A stretch of DNA of 64,000 nucleotides, from contig NC_069010.1 in NCBI RefSeq assembly GCF_001194135.2, forward strand, positions 9,010,585 through 9,074,584, written 5' to 3'. How positions within the stretch are numbered: the first letter of the stretch is position 1; the number at the start of each line of letters is the position of its first letter. The stretch is from Octopus bimaculoides (taxonomy: Eukaryota). A program made the position numbers and the translations under genes. Shown here one piece after another: positions 3,961-40,899 of the stretch. The notes beneath the pieces were generated by a model. It searched no databases. It was not told where the DNA came from and was given only the letters and a program-made list of their open reading frames with translations.

Positions 3961-4849
3961 TCATTAACTCTGATTGATAGGTACACACACACTCCAGACA
4001 TAAATCACATATATTCACTACACCAATGAAAACGACTCTTCTGGCCATTTCCCAGATATTCACGTTGTTTTTCAATTAACCATGCAGACATATGGCTTAA
4101 TGGTTAGGGTATTTGGCTTACAGTTGTAGGGACGTGAGTTCAATTCCTGGCAGTGCATTATGTCATTGAGCAAGATACTTTCTTTTGTGTTGCACCTGTA
4201 ATTCAAAGGGGCTAACTTTTTCACTTTCTGTCTCACACTGAATCTCCCTGAGAACTACATGAAGAGCATGTGCATTTGTGGAGTACTCAGCTACTTGCAT
4301 GTTAATTTCACAACCAACGGAGTGCCAATTTTGAATTAATCCTAGATTATCTCACAGTTTGGACGTTTTAATGATGTGATTGTCTGTTTTTAGAATGAAA
4401 TTGTAGGACAGGTGTGAGCAGATGGATCGTGCTGGTTTAAACCTAAAAGGTAGAATGTTTGAGTCAGATATGGCCAGTTGGGAAAAAAAACTTAAAGAAA
4501 AAAAAGAGACTTCTGTAAAAGAAAGATTCCTTTTTTTAAAAAGAAAACCATAAAAAATTATTTTGTAAAAAGGTTTTATGTCGGAAAAATTTAGCCGTTC
4601 TGGTGTAAAGTTCAAGATGATTCAGACCTTTTTAAAAGTGAAAGGCTTACACATGGATGCTTCTGAAAATTCAGTCAGCCAAACTTCTATAGACATAAGG
4701 ATACCCTAGATACACAGCGAGCTGGTAGAATTGTTAGCATGCTGGCTTTCATCCTTTCGGTTGAACTCTGAGGTCAATGTAATCAACTCAGCCTCAACCC
4801 CAAAATGTTTCAAGCCTTGGGCCTATTGAAGAAAGGATTGTTATCATTA

Positions 4850-5581
4850 TCAGAATGCATGAGCTTTAAGAATGTGTGTCTTAAGATGTGCCAAGTTGTC
4901 AGTAAACCGTCCACACTGGAGACAACAACATCGAATGTCCCCAACGTGTTTATTTATGTGCTGGTTGAATTGCAGATGTAGACGAAAAGTCATTTGACAG
5001 TATTTACACTTAAACGGCCTCACTGTATCATTGTGCATCAAAATGTGCTTCTCTAAACACTTTGCTGTTTTGAATTTCTTCTCACATTCACTGCATTTGT
5101 GTTTTCTTTCAGTCATGCCCAAGTGCTTTGCCACATGGGGTATCATTAAGGGCAGCTGTAATTTAGCACTACTGCAGAACTTACAAATCCAATACTTCAC
5201 TCCGTCTATATGTTTCGAAAACGTAGATTCCATTATTAGCTTATCACTGTTTTCTGTGTCATCACCATTATCATCACTGTTGGTTCCGTAACTCTGCGAT
5301 GATGTGGCTGAATTGCCCTCAGAAGTAGTACTCAATTTCTCAAGGCCCTTGTCTGTGGTGGTGGTGGTGGTATCTGAATCACATTTCTTGTTGCTCCTGT
5401 GAGCAATGTCTTTGTGAACAGAGAGAGTGCTGAACAGCTTGAAATGCTGGCCACAAACCTCACAATGGTACTGCCGAATATCTTTATGTACACGCTGGAC
5501 GTGTGACTGCATGAAGTGTTGTGTGAAAAACTTCTCTTTGCAACTGGTGCATTCATACTTCCTCTCCTTCACACTTGTCAT
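4850..5581 (-). CDS. C2H2 zinc-finger protein, 243 aa, six fingers (2 + 4) split by a Ser/Thr/Asp-rich spacer
   Basis: Fingers CTSC..HVQRVH, CEVC..HKDIAH, CKFC..HVAKH, CSEC..HILMH, CKYC..HINKH, CLQC..HILKAH; strong acceptor ttcttcttcattccacag| at 5584 two nt before the ATG. The true N-terminus could extend into an upstream exon. Confidence 0.9.
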   Translation of the reverse strand: MTSVKERKYECTSCKEKFFTQHFMQSHVQRVHKDIRQYHCEVCGQHFKLFSTLSVHKDIAHRSNKKCDSDTTTTTTDKGLEKLSTTSEGNSATSSQSYGTNSDDNGDDTENSDKLIMESTFSKHIDGVKYWICKFCSSAKLQLPLMIPHVAKHLGMTERKHKCSECEKKFKTAKCLEKHILMHNDTVRPFKCKYCQMTFRLHLQFNQHINKHVGDIRCCCLQCGRFTDNLAHLKTHILKAHAF

Positions 5582-5717
5582 ATCTGTGGAATGAAGAAGA
5601 AAAAAAAAAGAAACTGACTTTAACCATTAAGATGTACAAAGTGGAAGTTAACAAAAGTACTTGAAAATGAATGACAGGACATAATGCTTGAGTCAGTTGG
5701 TCCTTCTTAATAATTAC

Positions 5718-5779
5718 CTGTAACAACAACAAGTAAACGAGGTTGACCTTCACAGCAGCAGCAGCACAGAGCATTCTTA
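5718..5779 (-). other. Candidate 62-nt leader exon of the ZNF gene
   Basis: Acceptor ctttctccatcatcctgctttcag| (5780-81) and donor CAG|GTAATT (5716-17); 134-nt intron to the coding exon. Confidence 0.55.
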
Positions 5780-6159
5780 CTGAAAGCAGGATGATGGAGA
5801 AAGAGCCTGAAAATGGCCCTCCATGGTACATACCACTTGATTTTCTCATCAGGGCTCAACACATCTCATGATGTTAACACAAGATTGAAGAGGAGATTTA
5901 GAAACACATTCCACCCGTCTCAATGCAGCAAAGGCTTTTGTTGACCACTGCTATTCTGATGAAAACCAGGACATACTTGATGTTATCTTTTGCAGACTCC
6001 ACGTCTTAACAAAGGACAAAGACCACACAAACTACATTGGTATTATTGTTGGAGACACACATGGAACTGAGGACCAATTGCAGCTAACGAGACACATAGA
6101 TTCTTCATATGGCACGGGGAAACATCTTGAATGCAACCATTTTCAGCGAATACTAAGAA

Positions 6160-7900
6160 TCCAGCCTCTCAAAAATTATTACCATTATATTATTATTGTC
6201 TTGCTTCTCAGAGCTCTCGGTCTTACTTGCTCTGGTTAACTGTGAGAGTAGGCAGTAACCTGTCTCACAGGGTCTCTTCTCACAAATTATAAGACTTGGT
6301 TGTTGGATATCTCAACACCCAAGCATCAATCTCAAAATCCTAGCCATCCCCAGGAGATTTGTCAATAGCCTTTAACATGAGTATGAAAGGTTCCAGATTG
6401 CAAAGCAGTATATCAGAGGGAATAGAGTTGTTATGGGTAAGAAATGAGTGTAAATGGATATTGGTATGCTTGCACTTAGAAGAAAGAAGTATGACAGTGC
6501 CACTATGGAAAGTGTGAAGTATGGACCCAACCGAGAGACCAGAGTTGACAGCAATATGATAATGTAATTTAAAGATATGAGGACAGGAAAAGCCACTGGA
6601 CCATCAGGAATCACTGCTGAGACGATTAGAATATCTGGTAGAGTAATTTCCGGCCTAGTCACCTCTATAGCTTAATGACTGGTAGCAATAGTTACAGAGA
6701 TATTAAATTGCTGGAGAAATATCTAACTAAATGTAAACTATTGTACTTGGCTTTCTTCAACCTGGAGAAAGCTTCTGACAGAATCCCTTGCTCTGTAAGT
6801 GGCTTTTTAAATCTGTACAGGTTATACATAAGGTTGGTGTCATTGGGAAGAGATTCGGCCATGAGTATAGTGATGAATTTAGTGGTCAGGTAGGAATTCA
6901 CTTGGGCTCAGTTCTCAGACCCCACTTATTCATTATAATCATCCAAACCATAACAGAAGAATTTAAAACTGACTGTGCAGCAGAACTATTATATGGTGAT
7001 GACCATGCTCTTATAGTAGAATCTGTAACAGAATTGGATAAAAGATTCCAAGTAGGGAAGCAAAACCCGGAATCAAAGGGTCTTAAAGTTGACCTAGCAA
7101 AGACCAAAGTTGTAGTTAACAAGAAAGTAGATAAAACTTTCTTTCGCTAATGGGTTTGGAAGGAATTCTATTCACTGCATCCAGTGCAAGCTATGGACAT
7201 ATAAGAAGTGCAGTAGAATCACAGGTAATTAACAGAGAAAGCCATTTTAAAATGTGTAAAGTTGTGCAGGAACAATAAGAATTAAGGAGATTCCGTTGAG
7301 GTTGTAGATAGTTTCTGTTACCTAGGTGACCAATCATCAGTGGAAGAGGATGTGCTGAAAGTGTTGTCGCTTGAATAAGAATAGCATGGAGGAACTTAAG
7401 AGAGTTATTGCCTCCGTTGGAAACAAAAGTCCTCTCTCTCAGGATGAAAGGAAGATTGTATGATGCTTGTCCACAAAAAGCTCTGGCCCCGAATGCATAG
7501 AGAAGCAGGGAAAGAAATAAACCCATGCCTAACTTTGTTTCTGGTTAGAATCCAGCCTCTCTATTAGGTGAAATGTTTAGCAGTATTTCGTCTGCTGCTA
7601 CATTCTGATTTCAAATTCTGCCAAGGACAACTTTGCCTTTCATCCTTTTTGGGTCAATTAAATAAGTACCAGTAACTGACTTAATCCTTAACCCCAAATT
7701 TCAGGCCTTGTGCCTACAATAGAAAGGGTTGTTATTATTTTACTTCTCAGAGCTCTCAGTCTTACTTGCTCTGGTTGACTCTGTGAGAGAAGGCAGCCAC
7801 CTGTCCAACAGGGTCTCTTCCCACAAATCACAAGACTTGGTACTTGGATGTTAGATATTGTGGGAGATACGCAATACCCAAGCACTCAAAATCCCAGCTG
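6160..7900 (+). repeat. Pair of diverged direct repeats (~6160-6350 and ~7545-7900, the second interrupted by a SINE) flanking an RTE fragment
   Basis: Shared strings aatccagcctctc and cttctcagagctctc.gtcttacttgctctggtt.actgtgagag..ggcag...cctgtc..acagggtctcttc.cacaaat. Confidence 0.8.
6380..7500 (+). mobile_element. RTE-clade LINE reverse transcriptase fragment (decayed)
   Basis: GKATGPSGITAE, LYLAFFNLEKASDR, GIHLGSVLRPHLF, ELLYGDD (YADD), KGLKVDLAKTK; frameshifts. Confidence 0.85.
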
Positions 7901-9359
7901 TTTTACCAAGTTTGCATGGATCAGATGGAATTCACTGAGGCAGAGCTTCTCCAGCCAGATTGGAAACGACGGATACAAGCATTATGGCAGGCACACTGGT
8001 TTACATCCGTCACACCAATGTGTATCTATTGTTCTTTTACTAGTTTCAGTCATTGGACTGTGCCCATGCTGGGACACCACTTTCAAGGGTTCTTAGTTAA
8101 AGAAATTGACCTCTGTACTTTTATTTATCTATTTTTTTTTTTTAAGCCTGTCTTTTTTGCTAAACTACTAAGTTATGAGAACATACACAAACCAGCACTG
8201 GTTGTCAAGCAGTGGAGGAAGACAAATACATAAACATGTTACAGGCTTCTTTCAGTTTCCATATACTGGATCCACTCACAAGGTTTTGGTCAGCCTGAAG
8301 ATATTGTAGATGACACTTGTCTAAGGTGTCATGTAGTGGGGCTGAACCTAGAACCAAGTTTAAAATCACACAGCCACGCCTGCACCCATTATACGAATAT
8401 ATCAAAATCCTTGTCCTCATTTAACGTTTGCTTTTCCATGCTGGCATGGGTTGGACAGTTTGACAGAATAATGGCTGCATCAAGCTCCAGCATCAGCTTA
8501 GGTGCGGTTTCTATGGCTGGACACCCTTCTTAATGCCAACCACTTTACAGGGTGTGCAAAGGGTGCTTTTTACGTAGCTCTAGCACTGGCGAGGTTGCCA
8601 AGTAACTTGCAAGGAAAGAAAAGAACAAGAAGACAGAAGATGGAAAAAAAGAGTGAGGGAGAGAAGGATAGAGTCAAAGAGGGGAAGGGACATGGTGGGT
8701 GGGGTGAGTTGGAGGTAGAGTGGTAGTGAGAGGTATAGGAGTGGTTTGGGGATGAGAGCAAGAGAAGTGTTGAGAATGAAGTTATGGAAGAAGAGAGGGA
8801 TCAGTGGACGGAGACTTAGCAAGGAGGCAGTTGGTGGAAACAGTGTGAGCATGGAAGTGGTTTCAGAAAGGGAGCAAGGACAAAGGTAACCAGAAGGGAG
8901 GGGATGTGCTTACTCTGTTCTCAGGTGATTACAGCAATTTTTTTTTTTATATACCCAGGCCCCTTCCCCATCTTTTTTAGGAGGAGGTAGCCACAACAAG
9001 ACAAACACCAGGCGACTGACAAGTACCATAGATAAAGAAGGGATGTGATGTAGGGAAAATGCTTGATGGGGGGGGGGGCAGAGAGAGAGGAGGAGGGACA
9101 AAGCACCATACGTGCAAGCAGAACCAAAGTCGTTGATAAAATAAGTACCAGTTGCATACGGGGGTTGATGTAATTGACTTGCCCCCTCCCCTAGAATTTC
9201 TGGTCTTAGAGGGTCAAGGGCTGAGAGTTTCAGACATTTGACGCTTCACATCAGCAACAGCTGCATTTTAATGTTCCATGCGTCAGATGCCAGTTTCTAG
9301 AGGCAATTCTTTCTACGGCCACCGACTCTTATTTTTAGCTAAGCAAAATAATATCTCAG

Positions 9360-9600
9360 AAACTATATTTCCAGTGAGGGTGATGCAGAAGTTGAAGTCA
9401 AGACCAGTAATGGTAGGAAAGCAATGGCAATATTGAAAAGTTTTTGTCCAGTATGGAGTACAAAACCCTTCACTGAACTGTTGTTATACCAACAGCCATT
9501 TACGTGTAAGAAACCTGGAAGAAGACAGCGAAGGCCTCTCAATTGCTGGACAGAGTTGAGAAACATGGAGAAATGCTGTTGATGGACCATGTTCCTTAGG
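9360..9600 (+). mobile_element. Decayed non-LTR (RTE-like) ORF 3' fragment
   Basis: YISSEGDAEVEVK..KAMAIL and KPGRRQRRP resemble RTE C-terminal motifs. Confidence 0.45.
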
Positions 9601-9886
9601 CAGTGATCTAATCGACTGACCCTTCCCCCAAACTTTCGGGCCTTGTGCTTAGAGTAGAAAAGAATTATAAAGGAATGAAGTCGCTTGGGGCGCTAAACTG
9701 TAGTTATACCTTGTGTTGTTGTCGACACTTTGTTTTTTTTCCCCGTGACAACTCACGTAGAAAGGGTTTCTTCAAAACCGATAAATTAATTAAATGCTGG
9801 CCTTTAATTAGGGGACAGTTGGAGATAAAACAATAGCAATGAGAAAAAAGAAGGGAGAATTACCTACTTTCAGTAGAAAAGGTTAC

Positions 9887-9990
9887 CTGCATTCGAGAAG
9901 GATGTGGACGTCGGTATGACCCTGTCGCTTAAGACACCCAACAAAATACATAACAACCACGAAGTGTTCGAATACGAAACTGTATACTGA
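9887..9990 (-). other. Candidate first (non-coding) exon of the ZNF gene
   Basis: Begins after GC-box GGGGCGGG followed by TCAGT (Inr-like); ends at donor CAG|GTAACC (9885-86); second donor TAG|GTAATT at 9862-63. Confidence 0.5.
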
Positions 9991-10508
9991 CCCGCCCCTT
10001 TTTTTATCTAGTATTTCTAAATCATACTTTCGTACATTAATATCAACTCCTATGTGTGTATGTATGTATGTATGAATGAATGAGTGTGTGGATCTGTATG
10101 TACACGTTAGTTGGCTGCGCCTCGTGTTTCCGAGCTAGCAATCCAAGGGTTGCATGAAACATACGGGGACATTGTGGACATGGGATAGAAGGGGTTGGTT
10201 TGGGAAGGAGAAGGCAGTGCTTTCTCTCCTGTCTCTTGAGTTCAGCTCTTACGACTCGGGCTTTCTCAAAGATTTCTCCACAGGGGTCTGTTTGCTGAGA
10301 TATCTTCCCAGTGTGCAGGGTCGATGTTGGTGCTTTTCGGGGTTGATTTGAGTTGGTCCTTGTACCAACATACATACATAGGAGTTGATATTAATGTACG
10401 AAAGTATGATTTAGAAATACTAGATNNNNNNNNNNCAGTCCGCAGTTTCGTATGGTTGTTATGTATTTTGTTGGGTGTCTTAAGCGACAGGATCCAAATC
10501 CTTCTCGA
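9893..10508. promoter_or_regulatory. Inverted-repeat bidirectional promoter region between the ZNF gene (-) and FBXO8 (+)
   Basis: Perfect inverted matches 10006-10055/10376-10425 (50 nt) and 9921-9959/10453-10491 (39 nt) plus shorter blocks; lies between the two divergent genes; GC-box at 9991-9998. Confidence 0.65.
10110..10330 (-). mobile_element. RTE LINE 3' coding relic in the spacer of the inverted repeat
   Basis: KARVVRAELKRQERK...IPCPQCPRMFHATLGL matches the C-terminal zinc-finger-like tail of RTE ORFs. Confidence 0.65.
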
Positions 10509-11614
10509 GGATTAACGGATTTGGATGAAGAGAAGAGGAGAGAGAGAGAGAGATCCACCTCATGTTATTTAGCCTTCGGTTATTTCTTTAATATCTCTAT
10601 TATTCCATCGATCTCTTAATCTTGAAATTAATTCCACCAAATTACCCTCTCTTCTCCCTTTCTCTCTCTACTTTCTCTTCCTCCTCCTCCTTTTTCTCTC
10701 TCTATGTCTCTCTTTCTTACTTCTACTGCCTCTCACTACTCGCCTTATTTCCCTCTTACATCTCTTTTATGCTTTCTATTTTCCTTTCATCCCCTCAATC
10801 TATATTTTGTTCCTCTGCCTCAAACAAACAAGACAATGAAATGAAGCATTTGACAAAGAGGAGGAAGGGGAGGAACACGATGATGACGACGACTACGTTT
10901 CACTTCTCTTCCTTTTCCTCTGGCGCCTTGTTTTACTATTTCTACATTTGCTTCATCACCCTCTCTCTACATATCTTGTTCCTCTCTCTCCCTCCCCCCC
11001 TTGACTCATTCCCACCGCAGGATCAACGGATCGACGGAATAAGAGAATGAAGTCAATAACAAACGGCAGTGAAGAGCCAGAAGTGCAGAGGGGTTCGAAT
11101 TGAGGTGGGGACCAGGACATTATACCAAGGGCTGTCTCTCTCTCTCTCTCTCTCTCTCCTGCTGGTATTAATACATTTCTACGGAGATATTTCTACACAC
11201 ACACACACACCCCTTCGTATAAATATATACACTTCACAGCTCGTCCGGAACAGGAAGGCGACCAAAGACATCTTCTCAACGTATTTGTGTGTCTCTGAGA
11301 GAGAGAGAGATTCTGTGTATGTATAGTGTGTGTAAATAGAGATATATATTGTGTATAGTTGTTTCTTCATAGTTGTGTATATATAAAATCACCTTCAACA
11401 TACATAGACACACTTTATATATTAGATTATACTCTGTGCGTATATATTTGTGGTTATATGTGTGTACGTGTTTATATTGTGCAGTTACTTATTCGTAGAT
11501 GTATAAATATATACACACGTTCATGTATGATATATATGTGTGTGTGTGTGTGTATAATGAAGGGAAGCTTCTGCAAATGACGTGTGTGTTTATGATGTTT
11601 CCTCCCTTCAACAG

Positions 11615-11631
11615 AAACAACAACAATCGGG
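11615..11631 (+). other. Candidate 17-nt 5'UTR microexon of FBXO8
   Basis: gtttcctcccttcaacag|AAACAACAACAATCGGG|gtaagt. Confidence 0.35.
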
Positions 11632-11722
11632 GTAAGTGATTTATATATGTGTGTATATAGTTGTATAGGTGATAGTATATAAATAATTACTGTATTTATA
11701 TGTTTGTATATATGCTAGTGTT

Positions 11723-11773
<51 letters not shown>

Positions 11774-12730
11774 ATTCAGTATGTATGTATGGATGACAGA
11801 TGTCTGTGTGTTTATATATTTTGGTAAATAGACGTTCATGTGTTTTTGATTTACGTCAATTCTCTCTTAATAAACATAAACATAAACATATATGTTACGA
11901 TCAAGAGACAGTTTAAGCCCCGGCTTCACCTATGTTATTTTTGGACGTGTGTGTGTATAAATACTCAAATGGAGATAGTTTATATAGATAGATATATAAT
12001 AATTATCCTTCGAAGTCCCATATCGTTTAGAGAAAGAAACAACAGACAAAAACTGGGGGGGGGGGACGAATAAAAATTTCAAAATTTTTCTTAACAGAAA
12101 CACAAGCCTGAAAAAAAAAAAAAAGGCATGAAGGGACAACATCAGATCCCTCTAGTCAAAACTCTACAATTACCTAAAATATGTGTGTGTGTGTTTATCG
12201 CAGTATTGACCAGACTATCAAGTGTTATACATCGCTGATCACAGTGTGCTATGCAATGTTTTAGCCTTTGAAGGATGCCACCCCAGTAGCTTGGCGAGCA
12301 GCTAGTTTTCACTATATATATATCCTCTTTCCAGTGTTGAATCGAATCCTCCATTTTATTTCTAATTCCATTGAAATGAGATGTTTTTCTTTTTTTGTCT
12401 TTTCCAGTTTTATCTTCTAGAATGTTCTAAAAAGACATTGAATTTGGCAGTGAAGGAACCTAGCTCATGTAAGATATGTTTCACTTTTCTGTATGTTGGC
12501 CATGACTGGATTGCCAGTTAAGAAATTTGATCTGCAGCATCTACACAACCCTGACTCACCCTGGGTTTGTCAGGGTTGTCTCAGCTCCCACCCTGTTCAA
12601 TGCCTGCATGGATTGGATACCTGACCAAATGCTGGCTCAATCAAGTTGAATGCTAAGCGATGGGGATGTAAACACTATTGTCAGTTGTCACATGACTCTG
12701 GAAGGACAAACACACACATGTATGTATATA

Positions 12731-13955
12731 CAAGGGTTGGACAAAATAATGGAAACACTTTAGAATGTCAAACAAATCTATTTTAAAATGGGACAGGACC
12801 GTCTTTGGCAGTAATTACAGCTTGAATTCTATGAGGTATGAACTTGTACAAAGTTTGAATTGTTTCCAAAGGAATTTTTGTCCATTCTTCAGCTAAAACA
12901 GTCTCCAGTTCTTGTAATGATGATGGTGGCGGATATTGACTCCTTACTTGTTTTTCCGAAATGCACCATAAATGTTCGATAATATTGAGATCTGGGGAGT
13001 GTGGTGGCCAGATAAGATGTTCAACTTCTCTAGAATGTTCCTCGTGCCATTCAGTAACAACTTTAGCTATGTGAATTGGTGCATTATCATCCTGAAAGAT
13101 TGTGTTGCCCTCTGGAAACAATTCCGCAACCATAGGATGAATTTGATCAGAGAAAATGCTTAAATAGTCTTCACTATTAATTCTGCCATGAAGGGAAACC
13201 ATTGGGCTGGTGGATTTCCAAGATATAGCCCTTCAGATCATCACAGATCCTCCTCCATGTTTAACAGTGAGAAGAAGGCAGTCTGGGTCAAATTCTTCTT
13301 TTGAGTGTCTCCACACATATACTTGGCCAGTATAACATTCTTCCACTGCTCTAGGGACCAATTCTGTAGGTTTTTACTCCACTCGAAATGCTTTGCAACG
13401 TTTGTTTTTGAAAGTAGTGGTTTTCTGATTTCAGCCCTCCCATGAAATCTGGCTTTGTGCAGCTCCTGGCAAACGGTTTTTGTGGAAACTGGGTTCTCGA
13501 GGTGGTCATTAAGCTTTGCAGTAATTTTGGGAGCTGCACTTTTGTGATCCTTTCAAACAATTCACGAAAGAGTCTGACGGTCCCTATCTGAAAGTTTTGG
13601 TTTTCTTCCACCAGAGTTTTCTTTCAACAAGGAGGTTTTCCCCTCTTTCTCAAAGGCTGTCATTATTTTCGAAACAGTACTTCTTGATACACCAAACATT
13701 TTGACTGTTTTTGTTATGCTAGCACCTGTCATACGAGCACCGACAATTTGATCTCTTTGAAAGTCCAATAGAGCTGTCATTTTAATGAATTTTATTTACC
13801 TTTTTCTGGTGATATCTGAAAAGGAACAGCAATTTTAGTAAAACATGTTAAGCAACACTAATAATAAATCAAAAAACAAAAATAAACAAGGTTTTGACAG
13901 TTTTATAGATATTTCAAAATTATGATGCTAGATGTTTCCTTTTGTCCAACCCCTG
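12731..13955 (-). mobile_element. Near full-length Tc1-family DNA transposon, inactivated
   Basis: TIRs CAAGGGTTGGACAAAATAATGGAAACA / CAGGGGTTGGACAAAAGGAAACA with TA flanks; transposase pieces 13780-12783 include GARMTGAS..VSRSTVSK HTH, FQDDNAPIH and WPPHSPDLNIIEHLW. Confidence 0.92.
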
Positions 13956-14885
13956 TATATATATATATATATAATAGATAGATAGATAGAAAGATGTATA
14001 ATATATATGTGTATCTGTGTTTGTCGCTTGACAACCAATGCTGGTATGTTTACGTCCCCCGTCACTAAGCGGTTCGACAAGAGAAAACGATAGAATAAGT
14101 ACTAGGTTTAAAAAGAATAAGTCCTGGGGTCGATTTGCCCGACTAAAGGCGGTGCTCCAGCATCGCCACAGTCAAATGACTGAAACAAGTAAAAGAATAT
14201 ATATATATATATATATATGTATACATACATACACACGCACACACACAACAGGCTTCTTTCAGTTTTCATCTACCAAATCTACTCACAAGGTTTTGGTTGA
14301 CTCGAGGCTATAGTTGAAGACACTTGCCCAAGGTGCCACATAGTGGGACTGAACCCGGGACCATGTGGTTGGGAGGCAAGCTTCTTACCACACAGCCATG
14401 CATGTGCCTACACACACACACATATATATGTGTGTATATATAATGAAATTTCACGTACATACATACACAAGTCTCATCATCGTCATCGTTTAATGTTTGT
14501 TTTCCACGTTGGAAAGGGTGGATGGTTTGATGGGAGCTGGCCAGCTGAAGGGCTGTTCAGGATCCCAGTCTATTTTGGCATGCTTTGTACAGCTGGATGC
14601 CAACTATTTTGGTATTTGGAAGTCTATGTATGGATGTCTAGATGGGCTATTTTCATTTAACAGTCATTAGCGTGGATCACCCAAAAACTATCCCATTATC
14701 ATCATCATCTAATATCCTTTCTCCATGCTGGCATAAGTTGGATGGTTTGACAGGAGTTGAGAAGGCTGGGAGCCATACACTGACTGTACTCCCACCCCCT
14801 CCACTTACACATGTAGATGTAAGTTAATTTCTTTTATCCTCTTCTTCCAGGTTTTAGGAAATCTGTCCAAAGGTAAAAGTGCATC

Positions 14886-15103
14886 ATGGGCCAAGTTTTT
14901 CGTCGTCTTCAGGAACTCGAGAGGGAATGCGTCGGTCATCCTAACTACACGACCAAAACGTTGACCAGCAGTAGCTTTCCAGACTTAAGGGAGCTTCCAC
15001 CTGAATTGAGTTTAGCTGTCTTGTCCTATCTGAACGCCACCGACCTCTGTCTGGCTGCATGTGTGTGGGACACCCTTGGCAATGATGAGTTACTTTGGTT
15101 AAG
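14886..15103 (+). CDS. FBXO8: FBXO8 coding exon 1 (N-terminus and F-box)
   Basis: Acceptor ttcttccag| at 14850; MGQVFRR...LRELPPELSLAVLSYLNATDLCLAACVWDTLGNDELLWL matches the FBXO8 F-box; donor AG|gtaagc, phase 2. Confidence 0.95.
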
Positions 15104-15409
15104 GTAAGCAACTTTCTGGTTCATGTCACCCTTGAATCAACAACTCTTGTGCCTCAGGGCTGAAGTCCTTCTTTCTCCCACCTCAAACAGGGAAAGTCAG
15201 GAAATATTCATTGTCATCATCTCTGTAATGTCCTCTTTTACATGCTTGTATATGTTAGAGTTTATCAAGCCAATCTTTGGACTGTAGCCAAACTAGAGTA
15301 TCCTGGTACTTTTTTCATCTTTTAAGTCTGTTGCTAATTCTATTGCCAAAATGCTATCTCAGAGCTTTTACCCCTGTCAGCAACCAAAGGTCTCTCTCTC
15401 TCTCTCTCT

Positions 15410-17050: not shown

Positions 17051-17159
17051 CAAAAGTAATACAACACATAGGTACTGGTTTCAAATCTCTTCCAGAAATT
17101 ACAAAATTTCTTTCTCTTAAGCATGACACACGTGTCAGGTACGTACAAAGAATAATTGG

Positions 17160-17480
17160 CATCACCATCATCATCGATTAATGTCTATTTTCCATGCTGG
17201 CATGGGTTGGACAGTTTGACTGAGGTCTGGAGAGCCAGCGGCTGCACCAGGCTCCAATCTGATCTGGCATGGTTTCTACAGCTGGATGCCGTTCCTAATG
17301 CCAACCACTCCGAGAGTGTAGTGGGTGCTTTTTACGTGCCACCGGCACAAGAGCCAGTAAGGCGAGCCTTTTTACGTGCCACCAGCACAGGAGCCAGTCA
17401 GGTGTATCTGGCATTGGCCATGTTCAGATGGTGCTTTTTACATGCCATCGACATGGGAGCCAGTCAGAGGGCATCGGTCC
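17160..17480 (-). mobile_element. RTE 3'UTR / (GAT)n tail repeat; representative of many copies (e.g. 2890-2990, 14490-14590, 23110-23260, 43620-43930, 50650-50980, 54260-54420, 60975-61370)
   Basis: Shared core tttctacagctggatgcccttcctaacgccaaccactccgagagtgtagtgggtgc; the same sequence follows RTE coding remnants at 47420-48075. Confidence 0.8.
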
Positions 17481-40202: not shown

Positions 40203-40899
40203 CTGGCACAAAATAAACCAACATTAATTGACAGTTAACAGAGAAAGTGCCTCATACCCCCAAACCTCCCTGAAACAAAACAAAACCTCAGAGATTAGAA
40301 AATTTAGGGAGAACACCAAATGTTAGGATGCTGTCCTTGTTTAATAGGAAATCACTTGACCTGTGACTCGGCACTGAAACTGGACCAATTACATCACCAT
40401 GACAACCATTTCTTTAAGCTGATCCACATCTTTTTCGTTTATTGCCTACCCTTTTGCCTGTCACGTGATACCCAGGACATATTTCCCTGGGGTCCATACA
40501 TCATATATGATGCACGTTCCAAATTTTTTTCAACCACCAATGTAGTTTAGGACTTATGAAAGGGAAGCTTCACATCAACTGAGAATGTTTGAAGACAACG
40601 GCTGAGTGAAAGTTCGAAGCACGAAAAAGGCTTAAGACAGGCAAAAGATTAAGGGATCACAATTTTGTAAACAATCAGTCCTTAGATTTCATATGGGGTC
40701 CAATAGGTTTGTCTTCTTGAAATTGAGGGTATAAGTTATGGGTGTAGTCACAGGTGTGTGGTTAGGAAGCTTACTTCACAACCATGTGGTTTGGGGTTCA
40801 ATACCATTGTGCAGCCCCACCACAGCTGCTTGCGCTACAGCCCTGGGCTGACCAGTGCCTTGCCTGAACTTGGAAACTGGAGGAATCACNNNNNNNNNN

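Follow-up and report, generated by a model that had tools for sequence, protein, structure and literature searches.

A probable LINE-associated inverted duplication of flanking DNA between two divergent genes of Octopus bimaculoides

Between a C2H2 zinc-finger gene (hereafter ZNF) and FBXO8, two divergently oriented genes of Octopus bimaculoides, lies a short inverted repeat whose position raises an immediate question: do the two genes start from mirror-image copies of one promoter and leader, as a preliminary description of this DNA had proposed, or does the symmetry have another origin? We addressed it by computational analysis of a 64-kb window (contig NC_069010.1, 9,010,585-9,074,584, assembly GCF_001194135.2); coordinates below are positions within that window. 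The description that fits it best is that of an inverted duplication of flanking DNA, associated with the insertion of a long interspersed element (LINE) and located inside a divergent promoter region. Every statement about sequence in the preliminary description holds, while its interpretation of the repeat as a mirror-image promoter finds partial support.

The inverted repeat and the gap in its right arm

9893-10068, minus strand: left arm, with a GC box, TCAGT and the candidate ZNF leader, ending inward (about 10051-10068) in an (ATGT)n microsatellite.
10363-10508, plus strand: right arm, an inverted copy of the left arm minus 13 nt and 11 nt, with 6 substitutions, broken by a gap.
10426-10435, no strand: 10-N assembly gap, matching 16 nt of the left arm that comprise, on the outward strand, an A7 run and the GC box.

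When the left arm is aligned to the reverse complement of the right, 124 of the 130 comparable positions match and 6 do not (95.4% ungapped identity). The whole arm-spacer-arm unit measures 616 bp, with 294 nt of spacer between the arms. Two inverted blocks are perfect: one of 50 nt (10006-10055 and 10376-10425), which gave 2 matches in the window and 0 in 100 shuffles, and one of 38/39 nt (9921-9959 and 10453-10491). The left arm is the longer by two indels, of 13 nt at 9960-9972 and 11 nt at about 9909-9919; outward, both arms stop at the same position, and inward both run into the same microsatellite. Among inverted repeats no more than 3 kb apart in the window, this is the only one of complex sequence, all others being microsatellites. 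The inverted repeat in the assembly is real, far beyond chance. The perfect blocks of 50 and 39 nt, the genuine indels between the outer arms (including the 13 nt at 9960-9972) and the 10-N gap inside the right arm had all been claimed previously, and all were recovered here, the blocks by direct reading, a repeat scan and shuffles, the indels by alignment of the arms, and the gap at 10426-10435.

Two smaller features accompany the repeat. A 10-nt inverted pair, ATCCAAATCC and GGATTTGGAT at 10492-10501 and 10517-10526, sits astride 10508/10509, where the right arm meets the outer flank; chance may explain it, or a second small snap-back at ligation. Further out, GC skew reaches +0.73 at 8450-8900, left of the repeat, where the plus strand is purine-rich (GA), versus -0.68 at 10550-11000 on the right, where it is pyrimidine-rich (CT), such that both flanks are CT-rich when read outward from the repeat. 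This could reflect the strand asymmetry of divergent transcription or a low-complexity coincidence.

The gap invites the suspicion that a short-read assembler made the right arm or its gap join, through hairpin-like extension of a contig or the misplacement of one. In favour of such an artefact, the gap falls inside the right arm, and the left contig stops precisely with the last base of the perfect 50-nt block, a point at which a de Bruijn graph is expected to branch. Yet two indels and 5 substitutions set the outer right arm (10436-10508) apart from the left, and beyond it the assembly passes into unique sequence on the way to FBXO8; the arm is therefore a separate genomic copy rather than a re-used set of reads. 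The contig ends on either side of the gap are moreover collinear with the left arm, leaving only about 16 nt absent; the left-arm counterpart is ACCCGCCCCTTTTTTT, from which the gap is predicted to hold roughly A(n)GGGGCGGGT. Nine gaps occur in the window, three of them of exactly 10 N (1676-1685, 10426-10435 and 40890-40899), and the other two of these three lie within a poly-T run and a (TA)n run. The gap in the right arm, whose missing piece would hold a run of seven or more A, thus looks like an unclosed low-complexity stretch (A7/G-rich) and not like a misjoin; a run of 10 N seems to stand, in this assembly, for a short low-complexity stretch left unclosed. Taken with the sequence on both sides of the gap, these observations make misassembly unlikely. 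An allelic mis-assembly was also considered and rejected, as the sequences outside the two arms bear no relation to each other; heterozygosity in O. bimaculoides is reportedly low, which would make an allelic origin of a 5%-diverged copy unlikely.

The spacer and the origin of the structure

10059-10364, minus strand: C-terminal region of the second LINE open reading frame (ORF2) with the 3' end of the element, a 5'-truncated non-LTR (long terminal repeat) retrotransposon, identified by protein homology (tblastn); it has a zinc-knuckle motif, CPQCPRMFHATLGL, one frameshift and one internal deletion.
10051-10091, minus strand: microsatellite-like LINE tail, (TCAT)n(ACAT)n, merging into the (ATGT)n end of the left arm; presumed priming site of reverse transcription.

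What separates the arms was overlooked in the preliminary description. The spacer contains an open reading frame of 110 aa on the minus strand, from 10375 to 10043, that shares 84-91% identity with a set of short UniRef 'C2H2-type domain' proteins of O. bimaculoides, derived from transposable elements (P0046-P0051; E 5.6e-18). We take the matched proteins (...NIDPAHWEDISANRPLWRHTIKTGSADFEKARVARAELKRRERKQR...PCPQCPRMFHATLGLRSHLRFKH) to be the C-terminal tail of a LINE ORF2. By tblastn, the homology extends from 10364 to 10059 on the minus strand, beginning at about residue Y31 of P0051, with no second copy in the window or in the two related loci described below. Three related LINE copies part ways directly after ...ARKHE(A/T)QPT, which indicates that the 3' end of the element is intact (at about 10095) and that whatever lies beyond it is tail or flank. 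A Pfam search with the spacer reading frame matched no family, and an exact protein look-up found no record for that frame, for the ZNF frame or for P0052. Judged by its protein homology, the entire spacer is a 5'-truncated, 3'-intact fragment of LINE ORF2 on the minus strand.

The truncated end of this LINE is joined to the right arm at 10353-10384, where the sequence reads ...CCTTGTACCA, then ACATACATACAT, then AGGAG, with junction microhomology of the ACAT type that overlaps the (ATGT)n of the left arm. No direct target-site duplication (TSD) surrounds the LINE, its flanks being reverse complements of each other (the arms) and not direct repeats. Nor is there a TSD outside the arms, where ...TGCAT/TCGAG faces CTCGA/GGATT (left flank ...CCTGCAT, right flank GGATTAAC...; slashes here and below mark boundaries). 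Among the features expected of a LINE insertion, the spacer hence displays ORF2 homology, an intact tailed 3' end and a truncated 5' end, but no TSD; what a snap-back would be expected to leave, an inverted copy of the flank joined to the truncated LINE end through microhomology, is present. From left to right, one meets the flank, the LINE tail, the truncated LINE, that flank again in inverted copy, and finally an unrelated flank.

This arrangement points to a genuine and evolutionarily young inverted duplication made together with, or at, the insertion of the LINE, a reading to which we give a probability of roughly 0.55. We infer the order of events and the snap-back step as follows. The plus-strand 3' end ...CCTATGT(GT)(ATGT)n at about 10050-10070 (the 'primary' end, corresponding to the left arm) would have primed reverse transcription of a microsatellite-tailed LINE, its (ATGT)n end pairing with the (ACAU)n tail of the LINE RNA. 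Synthesis of about 300 nt of complementary DNA (cDNA) would have yielded a 5'-truncated copy, the 3' end of which (...CCTTGTACCAACA) would then have folded over onto the (ATGT)n run within the same strand, so that reverse copying of about 150-175 nt of flank produced the right arm. Finally, ligation at 10508/10509 would have joined this end to the far side of the break, leaving no TSD. Errors of low-fidelity synthesis during this copying, or mutations that came afterwards, may account for the right arm's two deletions and its cluster of 3 changed nt. On such a model, the site before insertion would have read a single arm followed directly by GGATTAACGGATTTGG..., without the LINE.

Since the spacer is a LINE fragment, the duplication is better understood as a side effect of retrotransposition or of break repair than as an event specific to promoters. 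Of the earlier proposal that an inverted duplication gave one gene the promoter of the other, the duplication itself therefore stands, as real, young and placed between divergent genes, whereas its promoter-specific character does not.

Evidence for the youth of the duplication comes from a second octopus. Alignable non-coding DNA is about 76-89% identical between O. bimaculoides and O. sinensis, whereas divergence between the arms is 4.6%; unless gene conversion has intervened, the duplication would be much younger than the split between these species and should for that reason be absent from O. sinensis (the octopus common ancestor is placed at about 25 million years; PMC8967140). The ZNF502 locus of O. 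sinensis (L003, CM016887.1:15393829-15414563, with ZNF at 10001-10735 of the locus) is collinear with the window at 4760-8858 only. A short interspersed element (SINE) specific to O. sinensis is inserted exactly where collinearity stops, at window position 8858, followed by unrelated sequence to the end of the stretch; the arms and the right flank are absent from this stretch, which ends before the orthologous point. As a separate observation, the ZNF protein is 74% identical to its O. sinensis orthologue, versus about 80% for the surrounding non-coding DNA, and is thus a fast-evolving C2H2 gene.

Several points weigh against a duplication made at LINE insertion. Collinearity with L003 ends at window position 8858, so that no orthologous empty site is seen there. 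The join across the 10-N gap would follow solely from collinearity with the left arm, and the searches for further arm copies are confined to the 64-kb window and 32 kb of related loci. The enzyme of this microsatellite-tailed LINE may differ in behaviour from L1 ORF2p. Finally, a pre-existing palindrome struck at its centre by a LINE would yield an identical present-day sequence.

This last history, in which a palindromic element (a foldback or MITE-like transposon, MITE denoting a miniature inverted-repeat transposable element, or an older inverted duplication) came first and received the LINE in its (ATGT)n/(ACAT)n centre, draws on more than the indistinguishable order of events. Microsatellite-tailed LINEs tend to be primed at microsatellites that match their tails, and it is just such a microsatellite that lies at the centre of the palindrome as reconstructed. 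Ordinary insertion would, however, have left a TSD around the LINE, where none is found, and a TSD is likewise missing outside the arms. Neither has a further copy of the arm come to light: self-BLAST found none in the 64-kb window, and none occurs in the related loci L001 (the contig of the best FBXO8 match) and L003, 32 kb together. An exact 38-mer of the arm had 0 matches in metagenome contigs, and the open 56-aa translation of the arm had 0 matches among 1.84 billion representative proteins, whereas the LINE spacer readily matched octopus proteins derived from transposable elements. We regard a palindrome that preceded the LINE as a doubtful alternative.

The shared outward end and shared inward microsatellite of the arms might also suggest that a low-copy SINE-like retroposon with (ATGT)n tails inserted twice independently, tail to tail, with the LINE between the copies by chance, and the left arm does contain a B-box-like string, GTGTTCGAATA. 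That string, however, corresponds precisely to the 13-nt stretch that the right arm lacks. ARAGORN found no tRNA-like structure, so that no tRNA-like head can be assigned, and comparison of the arm with Rfam gave nothing above noise; TSDs are absent, protein-level matches are lacking, and no other copies occur in the 64-kb window, where a common octopus SINE recurs many times. A pair of SINE-like insertions is accordingly highly improbable. The common SINE-like repeat itself has copies at 2894-2991, 8300-8575, 14260-14760 and 17152-17453, and at 1696-2030 of L003. The preferred reading remains an inverted duplication formed at or with the LINE insertion.

The gene pair and the arms as candidate promoters

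4850-5581, minus strand: complete single-exon coding sequence of ZNF, a C2H2 zinc-finger protein of 243 aa, 74% identical to O. sinensis 'zinc finger protein 502'.
14851-15107, plus strand: first coding exon of FBXO8 (F-box), with the ATG at 14886, coding sequence at 14886-15107 and the acceptor ttcttccag/g at 14850/14851.
9500-12250, no strand: CpG-retaining domain of 2.7 kb, observed/expected ratio 0.54-1.1 versus at most 0.4 on both sides.
9986-9998, minus strand: GC box GGGGCGGG (9991-9998), then directly TCAGT (9986-9990); candidate Sp1-type box and initiator by motif match, with putative function.
9881-9889, minus strand: candidate splice donor CAG/GTAACC, last exon base 9887; 5 nt outside the repeat, with no counterpart beside the right arm.
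11102-11110, plus strand: alternative donor for an FBXO8 leader, GAG/GTGGGG, at 11104, score 9.6.
11629-11637, plus strand: alternative donor for an FBXO8 leader, GGG/GTAAGT, at 11631, score 9.8.

The two divergent genes named in the preliminary description are indeed there, the ZNF coding sequence at 4850-5581 on the minus strand and the FBXO8 exon at 14886-15107 on the plus strand. The ZNF ATG comes directly after a polypyrimidine tract and AG acceptor that are kept in O. sinensis; the FBXO8 acceptor lies 35 nt upstream of its ATG, in a layout shared by a distant relative. Because both coding exons begin right after a strong acceptor, both genes need a non-coding leader exon further upstream. 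The head-to-head pair (ZNF on the minus strand, FBXO8 on the plus) encloses a CpG-retaining interval, one of the features expected of a bidirectional promoter, and the repeat sits in the left third of this domain. Lying between two CpG-depleted gene bodies, the domain is as expected of a shared promoter region from its base composition, and it is presumably unmethylated in the germline. The FBXO8 exon-1 peptide, in a search of 5.8 billion proteins, matched no Octopus protein (best match 82% identical), and the annotated octopus FBXO8 models may lack the first coding exon or be missing from the protein collection. The contig with the best FBXO8 match, L001, has only 1.5 kb upstream and aligns in exons only, at about 73%.

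Other remnants of mobile and repetitive DNA lie between the coding exons. A Tc1/mariner-type transposase remnant (DDE_3 and HTH domains, in two open reading frames) occupies 12783-13780 on the minus strand, between the repeat and FBXO8 and inside the would-be first intron of FBXO8. It is bracketed by mirror-image compound microsatellites, (TG)n(TA)n at 11718-11777 and (TA)n(CA)n at 14195-14247, 2.4 kb apart. A reverse-transcriptase fragment (RVT_1, just under the Pfam cut-off) is found at 6788-7150 on the plus strand, inside the presumed first intron of ZNF.

Whether the arms act within this domain can be judged separately for each. In the left arm, the previously claimed order of GC box, TCAGT, some 100 nt and a donor directed toward ZNF is present as described, with a candidate exon of 102 nt from TCAGT to the donor on the minus strand. 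At 7.6, the score of this donor is one that chance reaches about once per kb per strand; from these motifs, the left arm is a plausible promoter and leader of ZNF. The right arm had been held to read the same leader toward FBXO8, and this finds no support: homology between the arms stops at 9893/10508, 5 nt short of the left donor, the GC box of the right arm falls unread in the 10-N gap, and no plus-strand donor scoring at least 5 exists in 10300-11100, the first being that at 11104. A candidate donor thus follows one arm only, at 9887, and the best plus-strand donors lie 0.6-1.1 kb beyond the right arm. CAGT does come directly after the gap, with 3 substitutions immediately behind it.

In its full form, the earlier reading held both arms to be active promoters and leaders, such that ZNF and FBXO8 transcripts would start from mirror-image sequences and carry complementary 5' untranslated regions. 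Consistent with this are the head-to-head pair with two coding exons that each require an upstream leader, the place of the repeat within the CpG-retaining domain, and the CAGT just behind the right arm's gap, which parallels the TCAGT just behind the left arm's GC box. Set against it are the right arm's want of a donor before 11104, the unread GC box, the three substitutions right after CAGT, and a left donor whose score would be expected by chance about once per kb. We therefore view two active mirror-image promoters with considerable doubt; that FBXO8 starts from the copied leader is, on present sequence, unsupported, though not refuted.

The favoured reading, a duplication formed with the LINE insertion, bears on the gene pair as well. 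The event would have struck the CpG-retaining intergenic domain between the head-to-head ZNF502-like gene and FBXO8, and the copied flank plausibly spans the ZNF core promoter and most of the 102-nt non-coding first exon, so that FBXO8 would now be faced by an inverted copy of this promoter and leader, incomplete and without a donor. A bolder version, which we consider improbable, is that the snap-back copied a working ZNF core promoter and 5' leader, inverted, before FBXO8; transcription of the two genes would then begin in mirror-image sequences, and a duplex of 130 bp could form between their leaders or between promoter-upstream antisense RNAs. If true, this would be a germline case of a promoter born by LINE-mediated fold-back, with potential for double-stranded RNA, ADAR editing or small-RNA cross-talk between the pair.

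The same symmetry could be put to use in RNA, were the repeat transcribed in a pre-mRNA or non-coding RNA as a functional hairpin locus with a duplex of about 130 bp to be edited by ADAR or diced. Cephalopods edit RNA heavily, a general point in its favour, and the fold predicted for 9893-10508, computed with the gap removed, has 130 arm-to-arm pairs and -291 kcal/mol, with a z-score of about -20 versus shuffles. A strong fold is nevertheless automatic for any inverted repeat and so is no evidence of function, and no Rfam family matches; a functional hairpin RNA is very unlikely. A function as a cruciform was rejected, since a spacer of 294 nt makes extrusion in duplex DNA unlikely.

Comparison with known systems

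As a putative promoter region, the locus resembles the bidirectional promoters of metazoan gene pairs in having divergent genes, a short CpG-retaining region and a GC box, with no clear TATA box. Ordinary bidirectional promoters, however, are not built of inverted copies of one sequence, and the candidate leaders would lie about 450 nt apart only if the right arm were used. The location of the duplication makes it a natural test of whether about 150 bp of reversed core promoter and leader suffices for a new start site; should no transcription start in the right arm, the structure would be a neutral insertion scar.

As a repeat, the unit shares with MITE and foldback transposons its long terminal inverted arms, its small size (616 bp) and its strong hairpin potential. 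It departs from them in having no TSD, no second copy detected in the window or the related loci, and an interior made of LINE rather than element-specific sequence. Twin priming, the 5' inversion of L1 reportedly described by Ostertag and Kazazian in 2001, is likewise a rearrangement coupled to retrotransposition with inverted sequence 5' of a truncated LINE. Twin priming, however, inverts part of the LINE and keeps the TSD, whereas at the octopus locus the LINE is uninverted, target DNA is inverted and the TSD is absent.

The nearest likeness is to human L1, for which experimental and cancer insertions with inverted duplication of adjacent genomic DNA have been reported (bioRxiv 10.1101/2024.12.14.628481; PMC11702581). 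These arise by self-annealing of a 3' end at 2-bp microhomology, which primes synthesis, and foldback junctions that hold truncated insertions made by target-primed reverse transcription have also been described (bioRxiv 10.1101/2024.12.14.628481). Common to those insertions and the octopus locus are a truncated, tailed LINE between the flank and inverted nearby genomic DNA, a short microhomology at the inversion junction and the want of a canonical TSD; the mechanism proposed is also the same, with synthesis primed by a self-annealed 3' end and followed by end joining. The differences are equally clear. The L1 cases are somatic (cell clones and tumours), involve human L1 and have a poly(A) tail, whereas the octopus structure is found in a germline assembly and involves a microsatellite-tailed LINE. 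Moreover, the L1 events mostly duplicate the reciprocal end or give large foldbacks, while the octopus locus duplicates the primary, tail-side flank and copies only about 150 nt before rejoining the other flank. If its structure is confirmed, the locus would provide a clean, sequence-resolved germline case of a LINE duplicating its own flank in inverted orientation, in an invertebrate and by a LINE type unlike human L1, for a class of event so far documented mainly in human cell clones and tumours.

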